In this document: positions 32,068 to 64,000 of the stretch, in pieces
Layout of the letters: each line of letters starts with the position of its first letter
Numbering within the stretch: position 1 is the first letter of the stretch
Source of the DNA: Fimbriosthenelais zetlandica
Lineage: Eukaryota
Assembly (NCBI GenBank): GCA_977030845.1
Contig: OZ365118.1
Span: 15,314,001 to 15,378,000, forward strand
DNA length: 64,000 nucleotides
Direction: 5' to 3'
The notes under the pieces: generated by a model
The model's input: only the letters and a program-made list of their open reading frames with translations
Told to the model about the DNA's origin: nothing
Database searches by the model: none
Program-made: the position numbers and the translations under genes

Positions 32068-32825
32068 TCAGACCACAGTGTCCATCTTTTTCCGCACTGT
32101 TCCGTGAGGTGAGTTCCCGTCACCGTGCAACTCAAAACTCCCTGACGTCGTCGTACTATCATCACTGACTTCATCACGTGACTCGTCCACTTTACCCAGA
32201 GGTCTTAGCGGCCCTGTGTGGCCAAAAGTGTTGGTATTGGATCGTGAGGGAGAGAGCTGGGGGGAATGCCTGGGGTCACTAAACGTCCGTCCCTGACAGG
32301 CCTCACTCTCACCTTTAGCAACACTCCCGTCACCACAGATACGGCCATGTTTTGAAAGGTCATTATTGTTCATTTGTTGATGGTGGCCATTGGCCAGTCT
32401 GGACTGTGGCATGCCGTCGGCTTGGTCGATGTCACGGGGGATCGATGTGGCCACCGGCGGGGTCCCGGCGCCCGTGGGGCTGGGCCGCACCCCGCACTGA
32501 GACACCGGCAAGTTGCTGGTGTGGATTTTGGCCAGTTGTTCCCGGATACCATTGTGGTCTATCCGGGGCATGGTTTTACCGGCGTATCGTGCCCCAGGGG
32601 GACGTAACTGGTTACAGTTCGGTGGGAATCTCCGGATGTGCAGAGGCCCGTTGTCCACAGGGGCCCCGGCCCCTGCTGCTACTGGGCCAGCACCGGAGGG
32701 CAGTTTACTCCCGTAGGCCAGCCGCGTCCTTGTCTGGGGGCTGATGACGTCAGCATTCCGGCATGTCTCCGCTCCCTGCATGTCGTTTGTACTCCCCGTC
32801 CGGCGGTTCTCGCTCCATAATGACT
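32068..32825 (-). CDS. Pcdh: Protocadherin-like terminal coding exon C (phase 1 start, 251 aa plus split Glu, stop TGA; ends DDSTTTSGSFELHG...KKMDTVV*)
   Basis: Acceptor gttgtattttgttttgtAG at 32827-32826. G from exon B plus AG gives Glu in frame with the longest ORF of the window (32068..32877). GC-rich relative to flanks. The STTTSGS[FY] motif (32134-32163) and hydrophobic C-terminus resemble invertebrate protocadherin C-termini. Confidence 0.85.
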
Positions 32826-35800
32826 CTACAAAACAAAATACAACAGGCATTAAGCTAATGGCCCCTATAATGAGCATAATTACTTTTTCCTAATTAGTGT
32901 AACACCCGGGAACTGCCATCAATTCATCAATATATTACACTTGCAGAATTGATCTAAAAGGCTTCGGACATTTAAAAATATCTTGGAAAGCGCGCTTGTG
33001 AACAGGTTAAAACACCCTACCCTGTCTGGCAGGTTTCTGGATTACTATTCCTCCCAAGATACCCACCCCAAAACCCGGTGACATGAATAAAAGATGGAGC
33101 GTAATTCCCAATAATTTGCTGTATATTAGTGCAATTAACAAAGGTGATCTGAAATGCAAACTAATCTCAACCATAAGCTATATTCATGACACTAGTGTAC
33201 GGCCGACACTGAACATGTGTGCTCCTAAACAAAAGGCCCTATATATTCATAATATAACACTGACAAACTGCGGCACCTGAATAAAGCCAGCTTGAAGTAG
33301 TATATGAAAACATATTACATCACCGGGCAACAATTCAGGCAATCATCATGGCCAACGCCCAAAGTGATCCCACTTGAACAATGAGTATGAAGTTTGTCTG
33401 ATCTTGAGTCATTGGGATTGCCTGTATAGAAGGATAAGGCGTGTTATTCATGCACTAATACATCCACTCATGGACACACGAGTGGACAGATTAAAGGCTA
33501 GTTAATATGGGTGGAGTTTACGGTCTTACGTTAACATGGCTAATCTGACGTAACGTAAGGATCGTTATAACAGCTGGGTGTATCCTGATTGGTAATCACG
33601 TACAAAAGCTGCCGTATTATTAGCTCTATGGTAAATCCTGTTCAATTGACCATTATGCCTACTGTCCACTTCATTGTATTGATTTCAATGTTTATTGTTC
33701 AACTACAGGGACAAAAGGGCAATTTTAGAACTATTTAAAGTTCTTTATAAATTCATTTTGAAATACGGTATTTGGATGTAATAATACCTTTGATATTACA
33801 TGTAATAAGTCTTCTTATTAAGTTCTTCTCCAGGCTTATTACATTTAAAACTACTTTAATTTATACTTTTTTCTAGTAATATAATACCTTTCCTTTCATT
33901 CTTTGTATCTAAGCAATATTATATTTATGATCATTTAATTCATAACATTTAAAGGTTAATCGATTCAGTATTGTTCAGAATCAATACTTTTCCTAAAATC
34001 CACATAATAAAGTCCCTGCCGGGCTCACCCGTACAGCAGATGTTGAGCGACACTTGGACAAAACATATCATACATACATATGGTACATTACAAACATTGT
34101 CAGAGGCACTTTGAGTAGTACTACACAGTGCAGTCCTATTATAGGTCATAATAATATAGTCATAAAGTCAATATCAGTACATAGTCACATGATCACATAC
34201 AGTCTGAAGCTCCACTATAGATAATAATAATAATATAGCCACGGTTCAGTTGAGTTAAGTGCCAGACACACAACACTAATTGTCCATCCTGTTTGTCTTA
34301 AAGCTGGTACTCCACAGCTGCGATACTGCTTGCGACACAAGTACAGTACAAAATTGTGGTCCAAGCACTGCATCCCCTTTGTCCCACATCACCTTTGGCA
34401 CAATGGTGTTGCAAACCAAAATCGCAGGGGTGTAACGTCGCTTTAAAAATTCCGGCGGATGGACAATCGGTTTTGTATGTTAAGCCTTATATCCACTGGG
34501 TCATTATCCTGACGTATGTCAATAGTTAATGGGGAAATTTTGAGAGGTCCATTGACATTCATCAAGAAAACAACTTAGTGGTTATGAGGGATTGGATTGG
34601 AAAAGTTGAAGAGAGAATAGAATATAAGGAACCAGTCTATGAGTGGTCAACACATGTAGTTTACACACCATCACAGTGAGTCGTAATGGGGTAGTTCCAC
34701 TGGATTTCATTTCTTGCGTGTCTTGCGATTTCTCTACAGCAATAAGTGCAATTTTCTCCCCCAACTACTGCAATAGCCGCATCTTCTAAAAGTGTTTAGC
34801 ACTAAGAGCTTGATATTTGCGACTAAATTGTGCGTTTCGTGCGGCAGGAAGATGTAGCAGTTGCAGCTTGAAAATCGCAACTCTCGCAAGGCAGAAAAGC
34901 CCCAGTGAAGCTACCCCATGTATAAAATATAAAGCTTGAATGAGGTATGAGTAGTATAATGGTATGACACGCACGTGTGGATGGTACGTGTAGGTGCGAC
35001 TCGTGGTGGTCGACGTGTACGATGGCACGTATCTGCAACCACATGAGTAGGATGAAAACAAAATAAATTATCATTACAGGCCAGGGGAAATTATTTACAA
35101 CCTGGAAATTAAGATCCATCTGAAAGTTAAGATAGCATGGGCGATTATATGGGAATAGATCATCGACATTTTGAATAATGCTTTATGCAGAAGCATCTGG
35201 AGCTGTTTCAAAACGAAGAACAGTAAACGTATAGAACTAGGCTAATTTAGGTTTAGAAATGGGATCCAACCAGCTTTCATTACTATGGTTTCATCAAACT
35301 GCAACTTGGGGATGGAAATTCTACATTTATAAAGTCCTTTTTATTTGGTTTCCCTAGCCCTGGCATTGCCTCTATGTGTTCGGCACCTTTATAGAAATAG
35401 CCTGCTTTTCACTGAGCGACTGAGAGATAAGAAATGTTGATGTAAAACCTGGCCCACACTAATTCTGCGGTTGGGGAAATTCAATGAGAGCCACTATGAA
35501 TGTCCAGAGTTGAATTGGAACTTCATGTGTCCCCGATCAAATATCAACTTTTTCTAGGGGCTCGGGTATTTAGAAGGCTTTGGATTATTGATTTGAGTCT
35601 TAATCAAATACCCGCAATACCATTAACAGCACAGTGATCTCCCAATTGATTGACGGTACCGAGCATTTCTACGGGCTTCTATTTAACAACACAACCGGAC
35701 CTAATCATTGCTTGTTTGAATGCCTTCAATACACGATTGACCTAATCTAGTCTCCATGGTAATGCAATATCGCTAAGCTTGGGGCTTCTGGAATTAAATC

Positions 35801-36437
35801 TCGCTCGGTCGCTTTTCAGAATTTGCTGATCGAGCAGCAGCCAGGCAAGTCTCAATGCTTATACAACTGTTCACAGCATATAAAAGGCCAACGAGGATAT
35901 TGCTCTGTGTGTTTCCCTCCACCCTTCCCCCCACCCTTTTCTGCCCTTCACTTCAATACCCATTACAACAGGGAGTTAAATCTACCTTTAGTTGACATAC
36001 AAGGCTGGGGCGACCGTGCTGCCACTAGCTGCAGCGGTGGCGGAAGGAGTGACTGTTAGAGCTTCAACGAGCAAGCAGTGGAAGGGCTTCCATAATAGAA
36101 CCAGGGAGGCAAGCAATTAGATCCGGGGGAAGTGCTACGGCTTCAGGGTATATAGAAGCAGGGAAAATAAAGTCAGGCCGGGAAATCGACATAGGAAGAC
36201 CTGTAATGGGATCATGGGGTGGGGTGGGAGGGGGGGGGGGGGGTGGAATCAACACTTGGCACCACTGCTTTCTCTAGTCCTTTGAAATAAAGATACCCAA
36301 GGTCAACTCTACATATACTTCCATTCTATGATGTTCTTGTCAAACCTTGACTCTTGTACATTGCCAAAGGCTCAGTTGCATGTCTTTTTTCCTTATCTAA
36401 AGCACACACTTTTATATGTATGGTCTCTAACTAGGAT

Positions 36438-36460
36438 CTTAAAGCGGCTCTATCGCCTAT
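36438..36460 (+). mobile_element. Second copy of the TTAA-flanked transposon-end-like sequence
   Basis: CTTAAAGCGGCTCTATCGCCTAT, 22/23 identical to 18-40. Confidence 0.35.
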
Positions 36461-39400
36461 ATACTTAAGCTGGATATATACAACTTTCATTGACGCGTAA
36501 AATCTGGGAAGTGTGTAATTATGTATCTTTAGCATGCATAGTTCCATAAATACTTTTACTTGTAGGTCTTGGAGCAAGCTTTCCCAGAAAGTATCTGGTT
36601 GCAAACCCAAGCCTCAACATTGCATATAGATAGTCTCAGTGCTTGGAAGGTTTCTGTTGTAGAAGCCATGGTAACACGGTCACTATATCAAATATCCAAT
36701 TTAATTCTGAAACCTAATCAAGGTACAATCTTCACAGTAAAATGCATTTGGTTGATATTTTGATATCTGACAGCCATGTACAAGACACATTGCAGGCTGC
36801 TGTTTACCAACAGCATGTTTCCTATACTGGTCATGTGATAGCAGAAAAATGACTGGACTTTGCAACTATTTTGCTCGAATGGTCTATTGTTGTCGAACTG
36901 TCTGAATGTGAAACTGAATGGAGCACACATTTACCTGTATGAATTTGAGACGATGCTTATTTTATGGTGATTATATCTGCCCTGACAAGAACGTAAGTGT
37001 CATGGTAATTGATAAATGGAGCTGATGATAGATTATTATCATTATATTTATATCAGACACGCCTATATCTGACACCCTCCCATCCCTACTATACCCCCAC
37101 CACACCCAACAACACACCCCTACCTGGGATATCAAAGGCCAGTCATGTCTCCTCCCACTGTCTATGTTGAAATGTTGAAAACTGTTAAATGAACCATCGC
37201 TGTTTTTTGGAAAGTCACAGCACATTGTATGCCGGCAGTGTCTTTCCGTCTCATCCAGAGATAGTGGAGTCATTTCTGGATGGTTATTAAACAATTTTTC
37301 ACTCAGTTAATAACCCCCCCCCCCCCCAAACACCCCCAGAAGTTTTCGTTCTCTGTATTGAATACAGGTGTACTGGGCCTGGTCTATACACCTGGGGACT
37401 GCCACCACAACAGGTATGATGATTATGTTAGTTACCTGGAGTTTGTGGGGCGGGGTTGGGGGGGGGGGGGCTGGGGGGCTTGGGGGGTGATGGCAGATGG
37501 CAGATGTCAACATGGATCTGTCCATGCCGTCATCGTGGTGAAGGCTCAAGTTATTAATTAGAAATATCGAAAATCATTCCTCCTTGCCATGGCCGCCTTG
37601 TATTCATACGAGCACGTTCTGTTGATATTTGGGAAATAAGGCGTTATAGTTAGAAGGCAAACTAATTGGTTTTAGTGCAAGATATTGCATAAATATTAAA
37701 TTGATCACTGAATCTCTTTGCCTTTCATGAAATTTCTTTTGATGACTAATTGAGCCTTTCTGCCAAATTCTGCAGTTTAGTTTCAATATTGGGATGCCAA
37801 ATTCAATCTAGTTAAATATTACCAGTGAAGCCAGATATATGCCTACAGTTCTTACTTTTATATGTCATCCATCTGCTGGCAGCAGATTGCTATGTACATT
37901 TTGCAGTGATGTCTGCCTTGTCCTCTAATCAGGTAGAACACCAGCTTGTAGATAGCATCAGCTGATAAAGCTATACATGTACCTGGCCAAGCCGGAAACT
38001 CAGGTAGACGCCAATTAATTTGATTCCGGCTTACCAAAGCACATACGTACACACCCAACCCCCAACCCCTGACCATGAAATGTGACCTCACCTTAAATAC
38101 CAGCCCCACCCGTACATTAAGAGAGATGAACCTGTCCCTCATACTTTCATGTGCCTACCTAAAAGACATCAAAGTCTTTCCATAGTAAGTAGCCCAGACC
38201 CATGTGATTGGCAGCCTAAGATCTTCCTTTTCTCTGTCCATATCCCATTCTCTCAGCCCGCATTTACGTTGACAGATGAAAAGACTGACATGTCTGTCTG
38301 CCTCTGCTTTTTCTATGAAATATGTAGCCACAAACACTGCCATGTAGCATAAAAAAGGAAGAAGACCGGCCAGAAAAGCAACCCAATCTGTGATAGAAGG
38401 CCGTCTGCATATACATGCAGAAGGGAGGGCACAATGAATTATGAATTTAAGCGCCTCACATTTTCACTTTGCCAAAGCAATTGCAATCATATGGCCATTC
38501 TATCGATCTGCCTATCAGTTACGCCAGTGACACAGCAAATTTGATTGCGCAAGACGCCTCCCAGGGCATGAAATTGGTACCAATTCAAAATGCAAACAAT
38601 TATGTCTAAACGTTTAAAAAAGAGCTCATCAGTTAGGGTTTTGGTTGCAGCAATGACGTTTCAATGATGCATAAAAACGCCTGGCTGAGCAAAGGAATTG
38701 AATCAAGTTGCTCAGAAGGCTCCATGGACAGATGAATTGCTAATTGATTTCTTTCTTATTTAGCTGGCGTTATAAATGACAGTTGCACTGATCGACCTAC
38801 ACTCAATTTCCTCTAGCGAAATGAGATAAATGCTCGTAGAGGGAAATAATGTACCCTTCAATGTCTTTTGTTGCAGCATCGCAGCGAAGAAAACTATAAC
38901 AAGAGCTTCTGCCCATGTCAATCAAAGTCCGTCACATCTGACATTTGAAGACAAGCATGTTTCTGCCGCCTAAAGTATATAATGCTAATCAAATGGATTA
39001 CTCTGCTAAAATGTCATGAGCAATTGATCATGTTTAGGATGGAGGGGTGGAAAAAAAGGCTGGGAAGCAAAAAGGCGGGAGGGTATGGGATGGGAGTGGC
39101 AGAGCTCGGGCCGACCTAACAATGGCTTGCTCCTGCTGCCTTTTATACTGGCAGGGCTGATCGACATGGCAAAGGCAGAGGAGCATTGTCTATGCACTCA
39201 TCACTTCCAAGACCTCTTTTTTTACCACTCTCAAAATGTCGGTAAATAATTAATCTATCCTATCCATGCTAATTAGGAGCGCATTGTCCCGCGGACAAAA
39301 CACGGGCCCGGTCGGCTTTTTGGTTGAAGTGTGAGCCGGGGTGAGGAGTGGGGGTGAGGGGATTTACTCATACAATCCTACAGGATAGCATGTCAGGTAA

Positions 39401-40129
39401 AGAGCAACTCATGGACGCTTTAGAGCCACTCCCCTGCCAGCCCCTTCAATGACTGTTATTTGCGAGAGCCCTTCCGTGTCACCAAATCGTAAAAGATTCT
39501 GTTTAATGCATGGGAATGGCTTGCATGAGCTTCTGATAGGCATGTTTTGTCACAATACAGCCTAATTAATAAAATTTCCACTACACTGCCTTGTTCGATT
39601 GGAGGTCAAGCCCTTCTTTGACCTTCCCCCACACACCCGCTTCCATCAATAACACCCGCGAGAACCCTGCGATGCTCTAAATGCGTCCTCATAAGATTTA
39701 GAGCCGGGGGCTTAATTAATAATTGTGATTCATTGTCCTACATGGATTAAAGCAAGGATATTGGCGAACTGGAGAGGGATTGTTGGGGCCGTCTGTTCAG
39801 ACTATCACTATAGAAACTATTGCCTTCAATGGAAACAGAATAAGGGCATTGACACGCAGCACATCTCCATGTCTTGTCTAGTGCCTGGCAACATTGATCT
39901 TGGCATTCTTATACCCCTGCTTTGTCTATATTCCGCGCCCTTTCGTGTTCAAAACAAAGCCATGTATCTCGGTATAGGAAGCCATTGGGTGGCTTCCCCT
40001 TAGCAGTGGTTGACGGAGAGTTTAGCTGAGTCATGATGCATGGAACTCATCGAGCTGTCTCATGGAGGGCTGTTATTTGTCTCTCCTTGATCCTGATCAC
40101 TCCCAGGTGGGCTGCTCATACCCCCAAAA

Positions 40130-40435
40130 CGCTCTCTATCTCCCTCTCTAGCCTGCTCTCTCTTCCTCTCCATCTCTCATCATCTCTCCATCACTCTATC
40201 CCCTCGAGTTCCCTCCTATCTGTCCCTCTCTACTCTGTCCCCTCCGTCTCTCTCCTCCCTGTCTCCTCTCTTTCTGTATTCTCCTCTATGTCCCTCTCCC
40301 TACTCTGTCCCTCCCCCTGTCCACTCTCCTTTGTCTACTCTACTCTCCCTCCTTCTCTACTCTCCCTATACCTCTTATCTCCCCTTCCTCTCTTTCTCTC
40401 CCACATCCCCTATCCCTCTCTTCTCCCTCTTACTT
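40130..40435. repeat. Degenerate (CT)n tract (~300 bp) in intron B-C
   Basis: Nearly pure C/T on the plus strand. It explains the Ser/Leu/Pro-rich ORF 40033..40458. Confidence 0.9.
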
Positions 40436-41485
40436 CCCAAACAAGGCAGGGACCCTAACAAGCTGTGCTAGCAGTCTCAACTATCTCATTCTTTATACTT
40501 CATCATGCTAGATATCAATTATTAGCCGCTGAGGGAATAAGGGATACAGTGACAATATGTCCAGTGACAGACTCTATATACTACCTACTGTATCAGCCAT
40601 AGAACCTCCTGGGTCTTCAAGTCCCTAAGATAACTTGATGTATATTTCAGAAGAATTGGTCTTACTGGCCTTATTTTCTCCGTCTCTAATGCCCTATAGA
40701 TGTCCAGTTTAGACATACAACCTAAAAACATTAGCTATGTCTTACCATGTATCTACTAGTTTTTCCTTTTGATTCCCTTCAATACATTCCCTCTTAAAAG
40801 CTGTCTTTAGTTATGTATTAGCAGGTGTTAAGATCATTAAAATATCAATATTCCTACTAATTTTCCTGACTGTAAAATCCACGTCCTTTAACAGTTTACC
40901 TGCATTTTCTCGCCAGGGAAATTAAAAACAAAATGACATGACACAAGCCAATTCCCTTATCCACACTCAGATTTTCTTTCGACTGGAATCAAGCCGAAGA
41001 AATCCCCAAACATTGACTCGGTGCTCATCTCAAATCCTTAATAGCTGTCTTGTTTTATTGCTAACAGTCCTACAAAAACATGAACATAAATTGAACGTGA
41101 TTATTTTCTTTCTCAAAATTAATTTCTGACAATGACACCTTAATTTGAAGCGACTGACTCATCGGGAGTTTTATCAGTCTCTGTGAGACGTGTCTCTTGG
41201 GGGGCTGGGTGGAGAGGAAAAAAAGAATCCCTCTGAGCAGACATACACGAGACTTCCCTTTTTGTCCTCAAAGCTACAAAAACAAACTCTTGGCTGGAAA
41301 GGAGAAGGATCGAGCGGTGCGGATTTACATCCTTTGGAAACTATCTCCTCCCAAACGTGCGCTTTGCACTGGCTTATGGCTTCCCGACGACAATGGCAAT
41401 GTAAATCCAAGCTGTGTAAGGGGCTAAAAAAAGGGCAGGGAGAAGAGGCAAAACTAAAAGAGATAGGAAAGAAAGGCTGGCTCAC

Positions 41486-41672
41486 CATATGGGGGTGGCG
41501 GGGGTTGGCTTTCTCCGGGCGTTCCTGGGGGGTTACCATGGTGATGATGGTTGTCGCCGTCCTCACTTGGCCCTCGACCTGAGTCCGTGTTGGACATGTC
41601 CGCAGAACAGCCCGAGGCCGAGTCAGAGTCCTGGGGCGTGTCCTGTATCATTCGATGTAGAAGTTGGTGTAC
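41486..41672 (-). CDS. Pcdh: Protocadherin-like cytoplasmic-tail exon B (phase 0 to 1, 62 codons + 1 nt: VHQLLHRM...DSGRGPSEDG...PPPPPY)
   Basis: Acceptor ttcttctgaccAG at 41674-41673 and donor ATG|GTGAGC at 41485. Phases match exon A (0) and exon C (1). The motif DSDSASG..MSNTDSGRGPSEDG resembles the conserved DSGRGxSE motif of protocadherin tails (recalled, not searched). Confidence 0.85.
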
Positions 41673-41837
41673 CTGGTCAGAAGAAGCGGTTAAGAATTCA
41701 ATATGTTCCACAGATGGGGGCAGAAAAGAGAGAAGAAGAAAGAAGTCTATGATCTATAGTATATAGAAAGGAGTTTACAGGGGTAATTTGGTGGGTTTGT
41801 CGATGGATATGGGGGTGCTTATGATGTTGGTTTTTTG

Positions 41838-41873
41838 TTATATTGGTTATTTGGGCTTATATTGGTTATTTGG
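41838..41873. repeat. 19-bp-period tandem duplication (TTATATTGGTTATTTGG x2)
   Basis: Copies at 41838-41854 and 41857-41873. Confidence 0.85.
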
Positions 41874-44800
41874 TTCGGCTTATGCTGGTTTGATAGTATG
41901 TGTTCTGGCTCATTTTGTTTAATGCAGTTTGACTAGTGTTGCTTATGTGTTGACTTGTGTTTTGTCTCATGTCGCTCAATGCATTTTGGCTCATGTCGTT
42001 TGGTGTTATTGGATTCTGAACATGAAGGACATCTGTATCACAGAAGGACACAGTACTGCTTGAATTCTCTGTCAACCTCGGATTGTCATGAAACACAATG
42101 ACACCACTAAGCTGCAAAGGCATCCATTCTCTTCACAAATCACAATAGGCTTGAGGGATGAGAATTCTTATGGTTTTTTTGCCTCATCGCTACCGCATTC
42201 CTTGGATGTTTTCAGTGTTCCTAGTGAAAACGAGCGGGCAGGGACTGTGGCAGGGGAAAAAGGCGCAGGATCAATCTCCCCTTGTGTCTTTTTCCATTTT
42301 TCATCCCTTTTTTCATGTCAGAGGTCCTATTTTCATTTGCGGTCTGATTCTCAGAATCGTCTTTCAGCTGGGTGTGCATGGTAAAAAAACTGCATCCTTC
42401 GGGGAAATTTAAAAGGAAGCGTAGACGGGAGCTACACTATAGTTTTACTATGCCGAGCACAGGAGACCAGTCCCTGGCTAAAATTAGATAGAAGCCAGCG
42501 AACAACGTGAGGCATGTTTCATAAATTGCCCGGGGATGTAAGCACGTGACGGAAGAGCCACCGGAGGGGGTGGGAGACTAGCTTGTAAGCGCAGTGTTCA
42601 CCGCAGAACAACATGGAAGATCTAATAAGTATGTTAAAGCAAAGCGTATTAGTGCGCCTGAAAGTGACATGATCCTATTAGTAAGCCTGAAGTACACTCC
42701 AAGCACAATGATTCACTGGCCATTCAATCCTAAAAGCTCTTGTTGTGGTATAATGAAGCGGACCGTGTATTTAATCAAACCAAGGTATATGGCAGTGACA
42801 AATCAAAGGCAGGCTCCCGCAGCAATTATTCCTTTAATAGATCTATTCCAGAGCCGGTTTTCCTGCTAATGACACTTCTTTGTCAAAATTTATAATCAAT
42901 TAATGTCCGTAATGACGGCTAAGGTAGATAAGAAGACAACATACAGATTGGAAGTTTTTGGAGTGGAAATTGTTAGACAAGTACCTTCAGAAGGCTGTAA
43001 GGAAAAGGCAAAGCTTAGAAGAGCATCTTCCTTTGTAGTGCCTTATAGAAGGGAATTTCTCTTTCATTTTCGGGAACCCTCAATCATGCCTGCATTAAAC
43101 AAAGATGTTGAGGTATAAAAAGATTAGGGCACAGCATCAGGAACTTTATATGAAAGGTTTGAACTATAGAGGGGGTAAGCTATTCATTAAGATGCACCTT
43201 GATGGATCTTCCTACACCCTCTCCGTCTTCCTCATCAAGACCATTCCTTTATCCCCCCTCCTCCATCTCTACTGCCTAGGACACACTAAGCAAATTATCA
43301 GAGTAAACTTTTTAAACAACTTTTGACGTTTAATCCCCTGTTCAATTCCCCAAGCTTTCTCCATTGTACTTCTCCAGCCAGTGCTGCTAACTGGGATATC
43401 AAAGGCCATCCATGCCGCTCACTACCGAAAATACATCTTCTTCAGCCCTTGGAACTTTGAGTAACTATAATCTGACACACATTGTATGCTCAGTGTACCA
43501 TCAGCCTAAGCCATGATTGTCTTTTTTACACCAAGCTCCAATCTCTGAATAATTGTACTCGATGGCTCTGCTGCAAGAGTAATGGCTTTCTTCTTTCCCG
43601 TGCCACAAACAAATACCTTTTTACATGGCAATATCTTGATGTACAAATCTAAATAAAAACAAATCTAACATAAAAAACTGACACTCGTTTAATCAGCCAA
43701 GCTTTCCAAAGACCATTACAGCAAAAATCTCTGATCGCGCTGAAATGGCTGCGGCATGACTGCTGACAAATGCCTTGCTTACCAAGATTAGATAAGCTAC
43801 AGCATTGATTGTATACGATGCTATCGTATATCAAAGGCAGGCAAGATATATACATGTATTTGGTAGCAATCTACTTTAGGTACAAGGCCAGCAGGAAAGG
43901 CGGTCAGTTTCACAAACCTCACCCACCCCATCTCATCTTGTTCCTATCGCACTTTTATGCATGGAAGAGAGAAAGGGGAGGAGAGGGCTGGAGACTGCCT
44001 CCTGAGCTCCATTGATTCGCCCTGCTACAGCCATTAGCAGTGTAAATGTATACGTGGTCGGCAAACGCCGATATTGGAACATCACTTTTGCTTTGGGCGA
44101 ACTCAGTCTGCTCCCACGCAAAGCATGAACGTGGCCATCAGTGAACCAACTGATGCCATCTTAGCGTCCTCCATGAATTTTAAGGTCATGTCCAATAGAT
44201 CTTTACAATTTGGACGTATTCATTTCCACCTATAAAACCAATGCTCATTTGGTGGGAAAGTCTATACTTCCTTCTTGCCTGATCTAATTTTGGACACGAT
44301 ATGCAATCACTAATAAACTCACTCGAAGTCAGGGCAGTTTCTATACTATTGGCTATTTTTGAACTTTGAGAAGTTATCTGTCGGGTGCTGGGGATTGTAA
44401 ATTGAGAAATTAAGTAATGGTAGAATTTATCTGGATCTGTTTATGAACCAGACATTTCACACACTCTGATCCGTATGGCAGACTAATATTTAAAATCCCT
44501 GAGGCATTCTAGCCATCCCAGGTAAAAATAACATATTAATCTAGCCCTGCCATCACAGATATGAGAAGTAAAAGTAATGAGGAAACGGAGATGGACTTAA
44601 AAAACAGGTGTACATCTGCCAGTAAAGTCGCTCTTTTCCGGAAAGTGACATTGGAGAGGAAGAAGGTCATACACTTGTATAAGAAGGCTTCTTTATATAT
44701 GTGTGGCACATCACTGACACAAGCCACCTGTATTAAGATATGGCGCTGATATTGCCATATGTTAGTTACTGATATAAAGCTGCGTATATCAGCCCAGGTA

Positions 44801-45942
44801 GGAGGTGATGGGAATAATGCCCACTCCTCATATTTCTATAGGGTGCAACCTTTGCTTCATTACTCTCTCTTTTTCCAAGATCATTTTCTTTCATTATACT
44901 TGTCTTCTAATATGAAAGCAGAATGGTTTTGTTTCCTGAGGAGTTGACACTGTTGCGAAACAACCCTTCCTTCATTGCAGGTTTTATGACTTGTCAACCT
45001 GTCCAAAAGAAATATCACCTGACTTTTTGGCTAATCCTAGCCGGGGAGGAAACGTGAGAATGAAAGTACCCCTTCTATTACGTCCTCCAATTAGTTTTCC
45101 TACAAAACCGTAGACCACGGACATCTGTTCCCTCTTGGAAAATATGAAAGTTCAATCCTAATTGGGGGCAAATACGACGCTAGAAAATGTCAAGTTTCGA
45201 TGTCATGATCTCGCTGGTTGCCAGCTAGATCGGCTTTGATTGCTGTCGGGGTGGCTCGGCCGGGTCACGTCACCCGATAGGTCTTAGCGCGACTAAAACC
45301 TAGTTGTTTAGCGAGATTAGAATTTCATTATCGGGTGGAACTAGTCTGGATCATCTAAAGGCTTCCGTGGTACGTGTGTGATTAAAAGACGAAGCAGCAA
45401 TGCTAATTGCCACTATTTCCCCTCCCAATATCGGCGGAAACATGATCGCTAGCAATCGGTGAGATTGCCTGGCATATGGCCTAAACAGATAAGGTTCCCA
45501 GTGTCTGTATTGGAGACAATAATCAAACACTGGATGGTGAGGGAAGGCCATTTCATGGGTGCCTATCCTCTACCCTTGCCTGTGTATTACTGTGCCGAGT
45601 AACAGGTAATCAAATTACAAATAACGGCATTATGTGGTGTCATAAAAACCTACATCCCGGCTTTACAGGCGGAGTATTGGTTGTCTGTGTGCAGATGAGA
45701 GGGATCCGGGATAGGGATGGTGTAAGGGGAAGACCAGGGTGTTGTTTATTACCAATGAATCCAATCTGTTCTCTAACCGCCTCACAGGACCTGATGTTCT
45801 GACAATCGCCAAAAGGCGGGCAAAGATACAATTTGCACTTTATACACTCCAAAATCAAATCACGGCCGTCGATCGTACAGCAGCTCTTTTCGATGTAAAG
45901 CGAGATGGAATTGGGAACAAAGCGTCCAACAATGGGACCTTA

Positions 45943-46156
45943 TGACTGGAACAGACTGTGGATGCCTCCAGTTGCTTGCGTTTTACTTTTCATGCGACTT
46001 AAGAAAAGAAACCGCCAGCAATCGAGTGTGTTCATTAGATTTTCTAATCAAATCACAGAGGTTATGCATTCGCTCTCTTGCGGTGCATAAGTATGTCTAT
46101 GAGAGTCACCTGTGCCTTGAGCGCGACTGCAAAAACGCTCTGATCTGTTGAAGGCA
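45943..46156 (-). mobile_element. MITE family 1, copy 3 (inverted), inside intron A-B
   Basis: TTA|TGACTGGAACAGAC ... ATCTGTTGAAGGCA|TTA. TTA duplication at 45940-45942 and 46157-46159. Its reverse complement aligns with copies 1 and 2. Confidence 0.8.
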
Positions 46157-46835
46157 TTATAGAACATAGGCAATACTGAATAGTCAAAGTGGGCCTGGCT
46201 CGTAGATCTAAGGCTAAACTCAGTGGTGGAATATGATTTGAGTGTATGTTGTTTGTGTGATGTGAATAAGGTTGGTATACTAGAGTGAAGGCTGGTTCAA
46301 CCATGGGAACACAATGATGTATCAGTACACCAGACAGCAAAGGAAATCAAAGCCTTGTAGGCATCTTGTATTTTTGTCGAGTAATTACAATGGATGATTA
46401 TGAGGCTAAATGAGATAGTGGGCGCTCTGAAGGCAGCAAGTCTCTAGGCATTAAATCTATTTTTATAAGTCTTGATATGTATATGTCACAAGGAATATAG
46501 TCGGAAGAATTGAAGCTGATGGTATGTATATAAGACCAACATCAGTCCATTCACCAAACCTTTTGATTTTCTTTTCTGTCTGGTTGAATATATACACAGA
46601 GGGATGTTTTTTGTATCATAATAGGAGAAAATATCAACTTTCTTATACTACTTCATATTTGTTCATTACATCCAAATACGACTCTGTAATAGTTTCCATA
46701 TAGAATATCACACCAAGTGGAGGCCTTGGTATTTGCAGGTCAATTTTCTCACTCTCCCTTGAGGGTAGAAGTATAAAGAGGAAATTAGAGTGTGAAACGA
46801 AGATAAATGTAACCCGTACTCACTCGTTTACCCAC

Positions 46836-47153
46836 CTCTAGGTCTTTTTGCGTCAGGGTAGCTGATGGCGGCAGACCATGCTGGGGGTCGTAAAGTAGGC
46901 GGTGTCTTGGGAGGCTCTGATAACGCGCTTCTCTCGGGTCGCCCATCACTTTACTCGGCCTCGAGCAAGTATGGGGATCCTCGGGTGCAGGAGGGGGAGG
47001 CGGCTCCCTCTCCCTCCCCCCTCTCCTCTCTCGTTCCAGTTCCAGTTCCCTCTCCTCAGTTTCTGAATCTCGGTCATGCTCAGGCCTCTCTGGTTGATCC
47101 TGATAACGGAAGGTTGTCATGGGGCATTCCTCTGGTCGCGTTCTCCCCTCCTT
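46836..47153 (-). CDS. Pcdh: Protocadherin-like cytoplasmic-tail exon A (internal, phase 0 to 0, 106 codons: KEGRTRPEECPMTTFRYQ...ATLTQKDLE)
   Basis: Strong acceptor (ttttttctctcttttctcAG at 47155-47154) and donor GAG|GTGGGT at 46835. The frame is open throughout (inside ORF 46785..47189) and continues into exon B. Contains WIRS-like MTTF and a polyproline run. Confidence 0.8.
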
Positions 47154-50100
47154 CTGAGAAAAGAGAGAAAAAAATGATGAAAAATACACATCAAGACCTT
47201 CGATGTCTGTCGTTCAACCAAGAGCTACTATTATCAGTTTTTTCCACCCACGCGTGGCTCTTTTGAAAGTACTGTTATGATAGCCTGATTCATAGGGTCG
47301 TTTAGCAAGCGGAGGGGCTGTGCGGGTCCCTGGGAAGGGCTTGATCTGGTATATCTCACTGACACTAAAGGGGTTTAGGGCATAGGTGTATATGGTGAGG
47401 GGTGGGGAGGGGTGGCTGGCGTGTTTATAAATATGAACAGCGGCTAGGGAAGGGCTGAGCCAGATGGATGATAGTCTCTAAATGCGCGTGTGGCTTCAAG
47501 TCTCAGTCAGATCAGTTTGTGTGTGGAAGAAGCCAACCTTCCAATGTGGCTTCTACCTACAATCCAAAGTCCATGACCTAACACTACAGTGGCATCCTAG
47601 ACACAGAGAGATGGGAGGGAATTTTTAGCCCTTGCCAAGGCAGATGGCATCAAAAGAGCAGGGATGCATCGATTTACCATGCCTTCACAATAATATCATC
47701 CCTTCTTATTACCCCCTCCCCCTCCCCCTTACCTCCCCACCCCCACTAAAACCAGCCCCGGAAGTCAATATTGAGGGCGAAGTGCGGCCTCGAGCGGCTG
47801 TAGTCTTTGCCTGATAATGCCCTCGTACAATGGAGAATGGGGGACAGCAGTGCTAGGATGGTCATTTATATTTCATAATTCCCTTTCAGTGTGGCCAGGA
47901 TGAGGTATAAATCACAGTGTCTGGTGACAGGCAAGCCTCATCTGGCCACATATAGGCAGAGAGATTAGGACCCGCTATCAGTCCCAGCCAAAAACTTAAC
48001 CTCAGTTCATCTCAGTGTAGATATCCCACTGATGGACAATGCTATCCAGCGATAAGCTATACAAGCACTGAAAATCAGTCATTACTTTGAATATAGCTGT
48101 CTTTTGGGGGTCCCAGGAGTCATGATCACTTGTGAGGAAAATCATGACTGCTCATGTATAAGTCTATTCATTGGTAGCCAAAATGGCCAAAGATTCGCTT
48201 CGAAGTATTTTTAATTAGCTATTTGACAAGTCTATGGACAACTCTATGTTTCAGTGTCGGTGACATTCCAGACAGACTAAGTAGGTACGAGACATATCAT
48301 GCAAGGACATTATCTATAGTGGGAGCTACGTACTTAATGGTCTATCAAAGTTATTGCTTAAAAGCTTATCCTTCATAAGGTTTGACAGATTACTGTGTAT
48401 ATGTGTACGGGAATACATACATGTTGTATGTATACCGTGGAAATACATCTTTATATAACAGATTGAGAGAGATTGTGGAGCAAATGAGAAAAAACATTAT
48501 TCATATATGGTTTAGTTCCACTGCAGTCCACTGAGGTCCCAGGAGCTTTTAAAAATATGGTTCCTGCAATGCTTCCTTCTGACAAGTCGGTTTCCCTTAC
48601 GACCAAAGTTATGACTGCTTTAGGATTGTCCTAAAGACAATCTTAAGGCTGATATAATCCACTGCATTGGCAGTTGCAGCAGTAAATCCACTGAGCTCCC
48701 CTTTAAGGCTTCAGTGGATCTGGGACTTATGAAGTTAGAATGTCTCATCAGGAGATCCTTATTAAGCCTTTATTCAAGCATCATGATGGATCATTTTGTT
48801 TCCTTTGCACATTTTATGCTTCATGTAGCGAACCAAGCGTGAGAACTATAAACAGTCTTGATGTCTGCAGGGATATAAAAGATTCCTAATGGCATACATA
48901 AACTTATTACAATGTGCTCGTTTCAAATTCAAGTTCCCTACAGCACTGAAATTACCCAATGTTGTACAGTATGTGTGTCATAATACATCGATATTCTCTT
49001 TTAACTGTTATGTATTGAAGTGTTTCTTACGGATGGAATTTGATAATTCCACCCTTCACTTTCAATTTGTTTTTTAACTGGTTTTGACTTTTAACCAGTT
49101 TGCTATAAAGCCCCTGCCCAATGTGTCCACGAAAATCATTAAGGCCTCCCTGGGACTTTAATAAAGGATCTTGTTAGGTCCATCTCCAGTAAAGATGCCC
49201 TTAAGACAATAGGGCTTAACAAAGGACCCTAGAACTGCAGAGTTCTATGCAAGGGCCAAATCCAATTTTGTATTTTTAGAGGAAACCCATTAGCATTATA
49301 ATAGCCAGCACTTTCAATGATTTAGACCGTTGGTGTCAATATATTTCATCTATCCTCATTCCAACATTCAATTTGGCAATGAACTTTGTTATTAAACAAT
49401 GAACTATGTTATTGAACATCTGTAGATTGGTAAACATCTCAACTAACTGTTACTGCAGTAACAGAATGTAAACTGGATTTTGTGTTATAACCCCACCCAA
49501 TGTAATTTGCCACTCTTAGCTTTTATACCCATAACAAGGTGTAATAGAATTTGCCCGAATCTTCAATTTAATATTAGAGATAACGTGACATAATTAGAAG
49601 CTTAATGATTTCAGCTGCTGTACAACGGTGGTACGGACAAATAAGTCGCCCCTTCAGCACGCACAAGCCTGCCTTGTTTTATTGCATTTCGCATTCTAAT
49701 TATCGGATTTATGTGCATTGCAGTGGCATGTTAAAACATCATAAATTGTCTTCCTTTCACTCCGGTTCATAAATGGTTAATTTCAGAGTGTAAGACACAC
49801 CGGGAATCTGCCTTGTCATTTTTTTATACGACCTAGTTTAGAATTTTGCGATAGTTCGATGCAATGAAAACTGCGGAAATTGATCGGAATGTTGTTCCAG
49901 CGTTAACAATATGGTCGATTTCTCACCCCATTATCTTTCCCTTTCAGAGACGAGATAGCTGCTTATTTTACGAGTGGAGAGGTTTAAACCAGCGAGACGA
50001 GCATCTATAATGGGACGGGCCCGGTTAAATGATTACAGAAGAAAACCGCCAAAAGCCAAGCAGCGAATAATGGTATAAATTTACGGGCATGCCCAGGCCG

Positions 50101-50639
50101 GGAATCCCTTAATTGTCTTACGACCAAGCCCGTTACTGGCTTCCGCATTGCTGCAGGTAACATTACTCCTCAACAAGATAAGCTGTAATCCAACTAATGG
50201 TTCTGATTAGACTGAATATCTTATCACTCCCCTTCCATCAGGCACTCTCTTCTTCGTCGTCGTTTTCTTCTTACTCCTCGCCAGCCCAGGCCTTCTTTGA
50301 GTCATATTTTTATGTTTGAGTCATATTGTCGCGAAGAAAGGGGGCCACTGGTCTGTTGGAGGTATTATAAAGCCGATTAGAAGGTTGGGAGTTCACTCTG
50401 GTTTCCTTTCTCAGATGCAGGATACAAAATGCACCTGGTAATGGCAACCATGCATTGTACAACCATAATTGTTGTACAATGCCCTGAATATTGCCTAAAG
50501 TATTGTCAAATTACCTCAATGGCAAATCACCTATACACAAAATGGTTGATATTTTCACTCCTTTCAAAATCTTTTAATTGATTTAGGCGATTATTCAAAT
50601 TTCATGCCAAGTCCTTCACCTTAATGCAGTTTCTTATAT

Positions 50640-50704
50640 AACATCCCATAATGCTAATGAAACATCCCATAATGCTAAATGAAACATCCCATAATGCTAA
50701 ATGA
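50640..50704. repeat. 21-22-bp minisatellite x3 (AACATCCCATAATGCTAA(A)TGA)
   Basis: Units at 50640, 50661 and 50683. Confidence 0.95.
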
Positions 50705-50923
50705 GATGATCATTCCATTAAGACCATAATGCCTAATTTTCATTGAAATTCCACACTTATATATAATTCATGCTGTGACACTTTTTAACATTGTCATCCT
50801 TTTATCATAATCATTCCTTTTAATTGAATTATGATAATCACCATTAAATTATGCAAGGAAAGCCTCGGGGCTTTTCATTACGTGGGAAATAATTTCCTGA
50901 GAAAAGGCATCCACTCTGGCCTG

Positions 50924-51004
50924 AGGGCCTGTTTCATAACAAACATACAACACTTTCCCAGGGGGATATCATGTGCTAATGTATCTCATTTTTCTGAAAC
51001 ATGA
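50924..51004. mobile_element. Decayed MITE, same TIR family as 29874
   Basis: Starts AGGGCCTGTTTCATAAC. Degenerate right end TTTCTGAAACATG. Confidence 0.35.
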
Positions 51005-53650
51005 CAGAACATAACTTCTTGCCCTTGCAATGGCGTCCTGGCATGTCATCAACCGATAGACACCTTTATTAAGTGTGCTCTATTTAACCAAGATAAGGAT
51101 CAGACAAGAATTTAATTAGACCCATAAAAAAACTTTGCCCTGTTAAAAGGTGTTCACCCATTGTGGGGGCGATGTGTATCAGATCGGTGGATTGGGTGCG
51201 TATTTGTAATGGGAAGGACACATGCAAACAGTCATATCACGACACGTTCAGCCCAACATAGGCCTATAGACACACCACTCCCCGCCCGATCACCTCTCTT
51301 GCCTTGCATTAATCGGGCACCATACCCCATGCCTAATGAGCCATGTTTGCCTTATTGGATCCAGTGGAGGAAATCCATAATGCCAATGAAATTTGACCTT
51401 CCTGGGTTTGGGCTTCATGCTGGGGGGGAAGCAGGCCAGGGGGAAGTACCACAAATGCGGCCTGGGGATCCCAAATGGAAGAGTCGCGCAACAAAGGAAA
51501 CACTCGCTTTATTCTCTCCCCCTCGCTTTATTCTTACAGCGGGCAGATGTGTGAGGTTGAGCGGTGCAAATGCTCTAAATTGCATCACGCTATTACATTA
51601 TTTCCGTTAATTACGTGCCTCTTGTTGGTTCTCTATTAGCTGTGGAATCAATAGTGACTGAGTTGCTTGTCTCTTTCCGTTCCCTTGTCCCTGTGAATCT
51701 CAGTTAAAGGCTTCCCCAAGGCTTCCGTCCGTCGACGGTTCCCCTATCAATAATATCATCTCCATCATCCTTATCAGTGGCTATCACCAACGGCCCAGGC
51801 ATGTTCCATATTTTTAATGCCTTTTTTCCAAGGGAATACTTGGTCGATATTCCCCCCCTATGTGCGCGGTGCAATGAAAAATGTGAATAATCAAGTATAC
51901 GCGTTTAGACGGGCATCTATTTGCCCACTGTAGATATTCATGGGAGTTGTGAGTAGCGAAAATGTTTTTATGTCCAAGCATGAGGAGCTTTCTATTCTGC
52001 TGATAGACTCCCGCCATATCTCTCTATATCTATATATATACACATACAAGGCCTCATATAAGACATCCTTCCCAGTGCCACAAACAATCCCTTCTATCCT
52101 CCTATATGTATGTTTTTTTACTCTGCCTCAAGGGATCGTACTCATAAACTGTTTAGGGACACTATATATGCTGTGTATGGGGAGCCTGGCTTGCTCTCAC
52201 ACAGGCAACTGCTCTTACCAGCTCAGCCAGCCTAGCATGAGCTGCTCGATGGTTTTTAAAAGCCGCTAGGTAGAGAATAGCAGGAGAAAGCCAGCCACCA
52301 CCCACGGCCTCATTTGGAATTAAAAGACCCATCTCCTACAGATTCCGCGTCCCAAATCACTACGCTTCCCCTCATTTTCCCACTCCACCCAACCCACACA
52401 CTCTCATATTTGCAGCTCCCATCTCCTTCTAAGATTACCATGCCCCCCCAAGCTGCCTCCTCCTTAGGGAGCCAAGTCCCTCCTTGTTTTTCCCTTGGAC
52501 CATCCAGCCCTGGTTCCCGCACCCCCTCCCTTGACCACTTGCCCGACCGTCTATTAGGTCCTTGCTCACCCTCTTCTGAAATCAATCACTTCCGCATGCT
52601 GGGGAGGCAGAAAAACTTATCTAAGAAGAACTTCCCCCTCATCGAATTCGCGCCAGATGATTGGCTCCAAATGATCGCTTTCGTCAACAATATCGCATTT
52701 CTCTAATGAAAATATTCAGTTCCCTTCTTGAGACGCCGGCGCCTATAAACTGGCTCCCCCGAGTGCTGAAAAACTCGTTTAGACCTTCATGTACTTAAGT
52801 ACCTTGTGTCTGAATAGAGTTTTTTTTTAAAGGATACTGTATATTAGTAGGTCTAACTTTGTAGTTGCTCAGGCTAACTACCAATTTCTTTTTCTAAATA
52901 AAGTTAGAAACTGCAAGCCAAGTGTAGGGTATAGTTCCTAGCTTATAAAGTACACAAGATACTAAAAGGGTTCTATATACTGTATTTGCAACATGGAATT
53001 CTCTGACAACAATATTGTCAGAGAACATTATTATGATGATCAGTATTATACAGAACAGCTATTAATCATAGCACCTCGCCAGAAGCTACGACAGTCAATT
53101 GATTCCTATACAGTACCATTGTATGAAACCATGGCTGTCGAAGCCCACCCAACAGATATTCTGTTCCACTCTGTTGTACAATATCACTCAAAAATCTGTC
53201 GCCCATTTGAATGGCGTAGCATGTTTTACATGCTAGATCCATGATTAATGTTTACATCGATCGCCGTAAGCCTGCCTCACCCAGGGTGGCGGTAAACAAT
53301 GCAGCGTCGATCCATGGCCCACTGTTTGATGTTTTGCCAATGTAGAGTACTGTTGAGTCAAACTGCTCATTGACAAACCGGCCAATAACAGGCGATGATG
53401 TGAGCAGATATGAGCGACTCAAATGCTTGACAGAAGCTGCTCGGGTCCACAACTGCAAGCAGTAAGCGAGACTGGGGGAGGTGGGGGGGGGGGGGGGGGG
53501 TGGGGGGTTAGGAGAACAAATGTTTCTTCAGTAAATGTTTGTCGAGTGGGCCTGGGAGACTCATTCCCTCAGACAGTCCCTTTGCTCGATCATCATTTGT
53601 CAGTGATGCTCCCATTGGACCTTTCCCCCCAGACAAAGCTTGCATGTAAA

Positions 53651-53695
53651 GCGCATGCGTTGATTGGCCTGCAGCTTCCGGTAGCTCTCGCGAAA
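53651..53695. promoter_or_regulatory. Promoter-like motif cluster (NRF1, CCAAT, ETS, TCTCGCGA) inside the long intron
   Basis: GCGCATGCG at 53651-53659, ATTGG at 53663-53667, CTTCCGG at 53675-53681, TCTCGCGAAA at 53686-53695. Locally CpG-rich. Confidence 0.4.
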
Positions 53696-62600: not shown

Positions 62601-64000
62601 CTGTGCTGCGATCCCCGGGTCAGACAAACCGATAGTGTATTTGAACATAGACTGCGGCAGGCTGCTTGCTGCTGGCTTTGGAAGAGTTAATACTGGATGG
62701 TTTGGACTGTGCTGAGCTATCTGTAGTACAGTCACATTGCTCAGGCCTGATCTATCTGAGCTCGCAGCCAGTGCCCGGTGATGATAGGACCAGAGGAAGG
62801 TCAAGACAGGGAATGAATTATAACCGGGGTTTTGTAGGGGCTTTGAGAGAGCAAACCGTGATGCCACATCCAGCATACAGACCAGGGTCTCGCTTCATAT
62901 TACAAACTGACTACTATGGTGTTTCACTAGTGAAATTACACTCAAATCATGGTCGAATAGCAGCAATTTGAGATTAGACATGAGGATTTGTAGTCTATGG
63001 GAGTTAGGGTTCCGAAACTGAAGGCCAAGAAACCCAAAATCCCATAGAGCTTGAAGCCTGAATGTCAACTGCTCTTTTCTCTTTAGTACACAAAACCTTG
63101 ACAAAGAAATCATAGAAAGTACCCTTTAACTAGATCGCTTCACTATATAACAGGTATCAGGAGCCAACTAGAAGAAGTACAGCTTTTCCCATCTCCTTGT
63201 TCAAACTTTTTCTGGCACAGAATACGCCATCTCGTGTTGCTTTCCCTTCACATAGTAAATTTGTCCCGTCTGTGAGAAAAAGCCTTGGAATGTTTCCTTT
63301 TTTGCCTTGGCAACACGAATATCAATGCAGGCCAGTGTCGATACTGTATACAGACTTGCAAACTGGAAACTGACTTTATGCTTGCCTGGGGAGCAATTGA
63401 TGTAGCCTTCCCACACGCATATACACATCAGTCAAACTTGACCAGTCCATCTTAGGTTAAATTTCAGAAAAAAAACTCCCAAACCTAGTAACTTATCATA
63501 GACTGCTGTTGCTGTCCAAACCAAGGTGACCTTAGAGCAAGATCCCACATGTATAAAGACCCCATTACATTAAGGACAGGCAACCAGAACTGGCCTCTTG
63601 AATTCCAGATGGGTTGCCTGAGGCATTTGCTCATTGGCAAGTTGGTTGAAGGTGCCCGGGCCAATCCCTCATTCTCCTATACTACTAACCCCCTCCAACC
63701 ACCATACACCAAAAGAAAAGTAAGGAAGATGGCCTCAACGTTAGGATGGGAAAAATGAATTTGCGCCAGGCAGCAATTTCCTTTCCCTGACTCCTCCTCT
63801 ATCATCACGCCTTGGTTAACATACTTAGGTTGAAAAATGAACATTTTGAAAGCCCCTTGATGGCCTCTAAAGGCGTGCTTCAAGTGGCACGGGCTCTTGT
63901 AACATCTGGCCGGGTGAGGGACTACGAGGCGAGTGGACCTGACATGGCCTTCCATATTGGGTACAGAGCTATATATCCAAGACAATAGCTACCGGGGCCT

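Follow-up and report, generated by a model that had tools for sequence, protein, structure and literature searches.

Vertebrate delta-protocadherins, comprising the delta1 (PCDH1/7/9/11X) and delta2 (PCDH8/10/17/18/19) groups, have one gene for each ectodomain, in which a long first exon is followed at a distance by a small number of cytoplasmic exons. Their tails carry short conserved motifs, among them WAVE regulatory complex interacting receptor sequence (WIRS) sites that read xxTFGK or LxTFAP (PMC10318009). Seven extracellular cadherin (EC) repeats are found in the delta1 and delta0 protocadherins (PMC7339444). The clustered alpha and gamma protocadherins of vertebrates hold the whole ectodomain and the transmembrane segment in one exon followed by three cytoplasmic exons, and are defined by tandem variable exons upstream of shared constant exons. 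Among lophotrochozoans, Octopus bimaculoides has 168 protocadherin genes (PMC10084454). Here we describe a stretch of 64,000 nucleotides of Fimbriosthenelais zetlandica DNA (hereafter the window; contig OZ365118.1, G000:C37:15314001-15378000, of a 447-Mb assembly; exon coordinates are window positions), which contains three protocadherin tail exons, A, B, and C. A sequence-only reading of the window had considered them either the tail of one long-intron protocadherin gene or the constant exons common to a variable/constant array. The former turned out to be the correct choice: the three exons are very likely exons 2-4 of a single, nonclustered, long-intron protocadherin gene of four exons on the minus strand.

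The window contains no cadherin exon in the 16.8 kb upstream of exon A, as the sequence-only reading had stated, and tblastn with the seven-repeat ectodomain found nothing within it. When the whole assembly was scanned with the Cadherin profile (PF00028), a minus-strand match of three to four repeats appeared shortly beyond the window end, at C37:15381376-15382941, in an open reading frame (ORF) at L002:2881-5784(-). The corresponding exon 1 lies ~3 kb past the window end and 19.8 kb upstream of position 47153, on the same strand as the tail exons (Table 1). It encodes a signal peptide and one Cadherin_2 (PF08266) plus six Cadherin domains (PF00028, E 8e-116), thus seven EC repeats, then a transmembrane helix at residues 830-852 and 92 cytoplasmic residues, in which Pfam gave no match. 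The solved structures matching the ectodomain are gamma-B4, PCDH10, PCDH19, and others (E 1e-75 to 1e-109). By its ectodomain and exon structure the gene is a protocadherin: the EC repeats, within the six or seven typical of the family, and the transmembrane segment are in one large exon, and the tail has no classical catenin-binding domain and no Pfam family at cut-off. Exon 1 ends after residue 944 at a phase-0 donor (TCACAG/GTGAGT; slashes mark splice junctions), and protein conservation across four species stops exactly there, at ...SQ/VS. As this phase fits the phase-0 acceptor at 47153, the joining of exons 1 and A is consistent; exon 1 joined to exons A-C gives 1,364 residues, with a cytoplasmic part of 512.

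The three exons, their phases (0/0, 0/1, and 1/stop) and the 420-residue tail proposed from the sequence alone were borne out by the splice sites, sequence, and translation, the spliced exons totaling 1263 nt. Exons A, B, and C are genuine coding exons and not chance ORFs, given the splice positions shared with relatives, the low ratios of nonsynonymous to synonymous substitution rates (dN/dS), the orthologs of exon A, and the rise of identity at 47153. A complete HMMER search with exon C over 1.84 billion representatives returned ORFs at 60% (P0122) and 55% (P0123) identity, and the DNA flanking these ORFs contained exon B at 83% amino acid identity in two relatives. There, the exon B acceptors are identical (cag/GTACAC), the exon B donors are in phase 1 and the exon C acceptors split the same Glu codon, so that the splice positions of both exons are kept. 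With dS near saturation (at least 1) behind all the values, dN/dS (Nei-Gojobori) was 0.02-0.03 for exon B in the two relatives and 0.04-0.07 for the final 54 codons of exon C; exon B and the C-terminal blocks of exon C are under purifying selection. For exon A, the orthologous ORFs P0130 and P0131 were 95% and 64% identical in BLASTP and 96% and 75% identical in a MAFFT alignment, and the DNA identity to a close relative climbs precisely at the acceptor 47153.

An extension of the exon B match by seven residues upstream, past the acceptor (LT only), was rejected, as the orthologs show no conservation in this region. Pfam gave no family at its cut-off for the three tail exons (E <= 1), and a match of exon C to AIB (PF15334; 18.4 bits vs. 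a cut-off of 27, E 0.0015) was dismissed as a chance hit of a low-complexity region; a PDB sequence search of the tail exons returned a single match at E 1.9. The database ORFs P0122 (L023:10742-10783) and P0125, both homologs of exon C, continue beyond MDTVV as W...; translation of L023 under code 11 did not yield P0122, and the continuation is probably an artefact of the gene caller reading the TGA stop as Trp and not a longer tail.

Exons B and C lie on one contig and one strand with the ectodomain exon in two relatives, as shown by the positions of ORFs that were called separately on these contigs (Table 1). The ectodomain-B and B-C spacings are 22.7 + 8.2 kb and 17.3 + 7.4 kb in the relatives vs. 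25.3 + 8.7 kb here. A stretch of 10 kb downstream from an ortholog of the ectodomain exon (L022) contained no tail exon, the intron of the ortholog being longer than that. The only named relative is Pcd11x of Platynereis dumerilii (UniProt A0A2H5BFB8), which comes from a transcriptome study (PMC5725810) and matches the ectodomain exon at 41% identity over 95% of its length; residues 973-1007 of Pcd11x are 65% identical to exon B. Without interruption, Pcd11x reads ...PLTQRELE VHQLLQML...SNTDSGRGPSEEGE... with DDATTTSGSY placed 22 residues before the C-terminus, paralleling the order of the exon A end (LTQKDLE), the exon B start (VHQLLHRM...SNTDSGRGPSEDGD), and exon C (DDSTTTSGSF). The same order, LTQ..LE-VHQLL...DSGRGPSE...TTTSGSY, is found in P0121, a transcript-like JGI protein labeled "protocadherin delta 1" with a full ORF on a 5.8-kb contig. 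The contiguous LTQRELE-VHQLL in Pcd11x and the same order in P0121 support the first donor of exon A (GAG/gtgggt). Together with the seven-repeat exon being syntenic in three species, the shared motif order also upheld the identification of the exons as a protocadherin cytoplasmic tail, and the DSGRGPSE and TTTSGS[FY] motifs were as the sequence-only reading had expected. Both proteins are collinear with our tail in LTQ(K/R)(D/E)LE-VHQLL, SNTDSGRGPSE, a single match to the WIRS consensus, DD-x-TTTSGS[FY], and a final V, whereas the remaining tail is unalignable, their WIRS match is in midtail (LQTFAP, as in Pcd11x, or LQTFSQ) and they end with DMVV (Pcd11x) and DMIV (P0121) in place of DTVV. 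At 41% identity, the two are probably members of another paralog group. With the Pcd11x tail (residues 955-1241) as query, just one further protein and no vertebrate protein came up at E <= 0.001; a search of this kind does not connect the vertebrate tails.

That exons A-C instead form a constant region serving several variable ectodomain exons, in an independently evolved clustered array, has some appeal: a giant exon for the ectodomain and transmembrane segment, three small cytoplasmic exons and a phase-0 junction resemble the vertebrate alpha/gamma clusters, and all the protocadherin-like genes are on one chromosome. The genomic layout nevertheless strongly disfavors this explanation, and we consider it extremely improbable. 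Beyond position 64000, where the sequence-only reading had proposed to look for tandem ectodomain ORFs, only one was found: tblastn of the seven-repeat exon against the window and the next 200 kb upstream (L002-L021, no N) returned only the exon itself at E <= 0.001. Since the paralogs are 34-52% identical over ~800 residues, a second ectodomain exon would not have escaped this search. The next upstream ectodomain exon on the same strand is 1.77 Mb away and has a tail exon of its own, and the cadherin repeats number seven, not six. With no tandem variable exons upstream of shared constant exons in the window and the next 200 kb, the gene is without the defining feature of clustered protocadherins.

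The same conclusion holds for the paired members of the family. Full-length ectodomain exons number 21, comprising this gene and 20 paralogs, and all lie on C37, on both strands, at 1.2-23 Mb. Exon B as a query gave 13 related exons and a six-sequence exon B profile (alignment A1) gave 16 copies genome-wide, again all on C37. Each of these 16 VHQLL/DSGRG exons has an ectodomain exon of its own 6.5-72 kb upstream on its strand (Table 1), and this one-to-one pairing argues against a shared constant region. The profile of the C-terminal block (DDSTTTSGS) matched eight loci at E < 0.01 and one more at E 0.5, and each copy lies past the matching exon-B-like exon, farther downstream. The closest paralog, at 16.0 Mb and 52% identical, has the same four exons, intron phases 0, 0, and 1, and its own tail. 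Its exon-A-like exon has the acceptor cag/GAG and the donor GAG/GTGGGTAAA, the end reading LTEKDLE/GTGGGT; its exon B has the acceptor tag/GTTCAC and the donor TACG/GTCAGT; and its exon C has the acceptor gcag/AT and ends with MDTVV-stop. On the 23.8 Mb of C37, the ectodomain and tail exons are loosely grouped at 1.2-3.6, 11.2-13.8, 15.4-17.2, and 20.9-23.0 Mb.

Two further explanations concern the junctions. The tail exons might belong to a separate gene, or to a transcript with its own promoter within the 19.8-kb gap, and never be joined to the ectodomain exon; exon A does contain an in-frame ATG, at MTTFRY, that ORF callers take as a start, and the RNA junction between exons 1 and A is deduced. 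Coding conservation, however, reaches beyond this ATG up to the acceptor (KEGRTRPEECP ahead of the first Met, vs. KDGRTRPEECP with synonymous changes in the close relative), full-length transcript-derived proteins elsewhere hold an ectodomain and such a tail in one chain, and the synteny and strand are preserved in three species and 16 paralogs, making a separate gene very unlikely. The gene model may alternatively be right but incomplete, with extra small exons in the long introns or with alternative tails, for example a short isoform if the exon 1 donor is read through, or a longer one if a second exon A donor is used. This second in-frame donor (CGA/gtgagt) lies 12 nt past the first and would add VGKR, and both donors and the following ~57 nt are perfectly conserved in the close relative (Table 1); the VGKRVSTGY reading survives in P0131 too, which is more distant. 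Isoforms with differing tails are reported for the vertebrate delta-protocadherins (PMC7339444). On the other side, tblastn with two full-length tails from other species revealed no further matching exon in the introns, the 16.0-Mb paralog is without the second donor and the four residues are absent from the cDNAs of other species. An RNA fold of the conserved start of intron 2 was nothing unusual (z = 0.10). An incomplete model is somewhat unlikely.

The single four-exon gene remains our preferred explanation, and several points weigh against it as drawn. Five of the 21 ectodomain exons (C37 11.20, 12.27, 13.81, 20.89, and 22.98 Mb) have no detectable tail exon. The junction of exons 1 and A and the freedom of the 19.8-kb intron from small exons are both inferred, the RNA junctions as a whole resting on splice signals, phases, conservation, and other species' cDNAs. 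Of the exon A donors, the second is conserved as well as the first, and the tail could therefore be 424 residues in some or all transcripts. As to the tail's function, the WIRS consensus is short, a shuffled tail having at least one match 16% of the time (chance P = 0.16), and the NTFGH site considered below lacks the hydrophobic first residue in this gene.

Table 1. Exons, tail motifs, orthologous loci, and family pairs; each pair gives the start coordinates of the ectodomain exon and of its VHQLL/DSGRG exon
Feature	Sequence	Position	Strand	Details
Exon 1 (ectodomain/transmembrane)	G000:C37	15380953-15383784 (L002:2953-5784)	minus	944 aa; outside window
Exon A (gene exon 2)	window	47153-46836	minus	acceptor ttttctcag/AAG, phase 0; donor GAG/gtgggt, phase 0; 106 aa
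Exon B (gene exon 3)	window	41672-41486	minus	acceptor gaccag/GTA, phase 0; donor TATG/gtgagc, phase 1; 187 nt
Exon C (last exon)	window	32825-32068	minus	acceptor ttttgtag/AG, phase 1; TGA stop 32070-32068; 251 aa + split codon
Intron 2, first ~57 nt	window	46779..46835	minus	100% identical to close relative, above exon A itself
MTTFRY, WIRS match	window	47103..47120	minus	residues 956-961; exon A
Acidic SNTDSGRGPSEDGD	window	41553..41594	minus	core SNTDSGRGPSE invariant in six aligned tails
NTFGH	window	32218..32232	minus	NTFG invariant in six homologs
DDSTTTSGSF	window	32134..32163	minus	DD-x-TTTSGS invariant in all aligned tails, including Pcd11x and P0121
C-terminal DTVV	window	32071..32082	minus	MDTVV kept in orthologs and 16.0-Mb paralog
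Relative ERZ25767047	ctg39071	ectodomain 2778593-2781541; exon B ~2804207; exon C 2812313-2813188	plus	ectodomain P0002 (75%); exon C P0123
Relative ERZ26168297	contig_275	ectodomain 124515-127454; exon B ~107204; exon C 99041-99823	minus	ectodomain P0003 (70%)
Pair	C37	1197081 -> 1190494	minus	
Pair	C37	1299358 -> 1277919	minus	
Pair	C37	1832383 -> 1846327	plus	
Pair	C37	2259875 -> 2239257	minus	
Pair	C37	2987372 -> 3044848	plus	
Pair	C37	3145924 -> 3112354	minus	
Pair	C37	3272058 -> 3239478	minus	
Pair	C37	3467279 -> 3490450	plus	
Pair	C37	3627123 -> 3645709	plus	
Pair	C37	12398708 -> 12447159	plus	
Pair	C37	13390801 -> 13318202	minus	
Pair	C37	15380953 -> 15355493	minus	this gene
Pair	C37	16003223 -> 16060754	plus	
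Pair	C37	16422639 -> 16464816	plus	
Pair	C37	17151304 -> 17136032	minus	
Pair	C37	21859236 -> 21873492	plus	

Among the known systems, the gene resembles the delta1 group in three ways: it has seven EC repeats, as the delta1 and delta0 protocadherins do; it is a stand-alone gene with long introns, having one ectodomain per gene, a long first exon, and few distant cytoplasmic exons; and its tail consists of short motifs. It differs from the vertebrate delta1 genes in having neither the delta1 cytoplasmic domain (no PF08374 match in the tail exons or exon 1) nor any other tail family. The RRVTF site at which PP1-alpha (protein phosphatase 1 alpha) docks in conserved motif 3 (CM3) is degenerate, the equivalent position reading KTHLRFELD here (THLRF) vs. 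KEV(S/R)F in more distant homologs; the RVxF-like KEV(S/R)F of the latter is a possible PP1 docking site, which is THLRF throughout this ortholog group. Among the solved structures, PCDH1 matches the ectodomain no better than delta2 or clustered chains do. VHQLL... and DSGRGPSE look like ..QLLSML.. and DSGRGDSE of PCDH10 and may be equivalents of CM1 and CM2. The clustered protocadherins share with this gene the single exon for ectodomain and transmembrane segment followed by three cytoplasmic exons, and the alpha constant region a TFG(K/H) motif in the final part of the tail (FITFGK); they differ in that the tail here has no Cadherin_tail match and its exons are not shared. Like the cephalopod expansions, this is a lophotrochozoan family with large exons for ectodomain and transmembrane segment, but its ~21 genes are spread over a 23.8-Mb chromosome at spacings of ~0.05 to 7.6 Mb, without tight tandem clusters.

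Pro, Ser, Gly, and Arg abound in the cytoplasmic domain, which is mostly low-complexity in exon C and is predicted to be intrinsically disordered: an AlphaFold2 model of exon C, built from a six-homolog alignment, had a mean predicted local distance difference test score (pLDDT) of 46.5, a predicted template modeling score of 0.12 and no secondary structure, with the pLDDT rising only over NTFGHTGPLRPLGKVDE, to ~67. The conserved parts are mainly short motifs: exon 1 has RNHRDSYKYMRRVDLEHQSPSPKHIP and KTHLRFELD; exon A has MTTFRYQDQP and LPRHR..YDPQHG...LTQKDLE; exon B has VHQLL and SNTDSGRGPSE; and exon C has SLW.E.RR, RRFP.NCNQLRPP, SQCG.RP.P.GA, NTFGH.GPLRPLGKV, DDSTTTSGSFELHGD, and KMDTVV. 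The juxtamembrane RNHRDSYKYMRRVDLEHQSPSPKHIP.MRRVETDEKV (exon 1 cytoplasmic part, L002:2953-3240, minus) is identical in four species.

By analogy with other protocadherins, the ectodomain would mediate cell-cell recognition and the 512-residue tail would act via short linear motifs; the binding partners proposed here are suggested by motif matches. The WIRS consensus, hydrophobic-x-T/S-F-x-x, binds the WAVE regulatory complex, and human examples include LSTFAP of PCDH9, FSTFGK of PCDH10 and PCDH18, FITFGK of the alpha constant region, and FQTFGK (PMC10318009 Table 1). In a regex scan, MTTFRY was the sole match to the consensus in the cytoplasmic domain (chance rate 0.16 per tail); it is invariant in three species, including P0130 and P0131. 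The NTFGH site reads TNTFGH in this gene, off the consensus, vs. YVNTFG(H/N), on the consensus, in more distant homologs, and the only WIRS match of the 16.0-Mb paralog is VNTFGH at the same position. The WIRS-type MTTFRY, together with the related NTFGH site, would recruit the WAVE regulatory complex, and we regard it as the best functional lead for the tail; the invariant acidic SNTDSGRGPSE and the DDSTTTSGS block may be further working motifs. The "hydrophobic C-terminus" of the sequence-only reading is better described as a conserved -DTVV end. Class I PDZ ligands have T at position -2 and V at position 0, and the -DTVV end is thus a candidate ligand of this class that could bind PDZ proteins.

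Elsewhere in the window, no further convincing gene, tRNA, or large repeat was found at 1-32000 and 47200-64000, and of the 14 ORFs of at least 130 residues, those not containing the exons are of low complexity or overlap the exons in antisense. The B-C intron has a CT-rich low-complexity region at 40033-40458 (+) with a spurious Ser/Leu/Pro ORF of 141 residues, and at 40193-40271 a two-copy tandem repeat of 39 nt; there is no sign of a gene.

The analysis provides a four-exon gene model, a map of the family's ectodomain and tail exons on one chromosome, and a list of conserved tail motifs. Neither this locus nor the 16 paired family members form an independently evolved variable/constant protocadherin array; the ~21 protocadherins appear to be ordinary stand-alone genes with long introns. 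With each paralogous gene having its own tail, the diversity would come from gene number and not from variable/constant splicing. The conserved tail motifs (WIRS-type, SNTDSGRGPSE, DDSTTTSGS, and -DTVV) lend themselves to binding-partner tests in a lophotrochozoan. More speculatively, the NTFG(H) site encoded by exon C may share its origin with the TFGK WIRS found in the alpha constant region and in the delta2 and PCDH12 tails, and the tandem donor that follows exon A may act as a regulated +/-VGKR switch; we consider these linked ideas unlikely. If the NTFG(H)/TFGK homology is true, recruitment of the WAVE complex would be ancestral to protocadherin tails and older than the vertebrate variable/constant arrangement.

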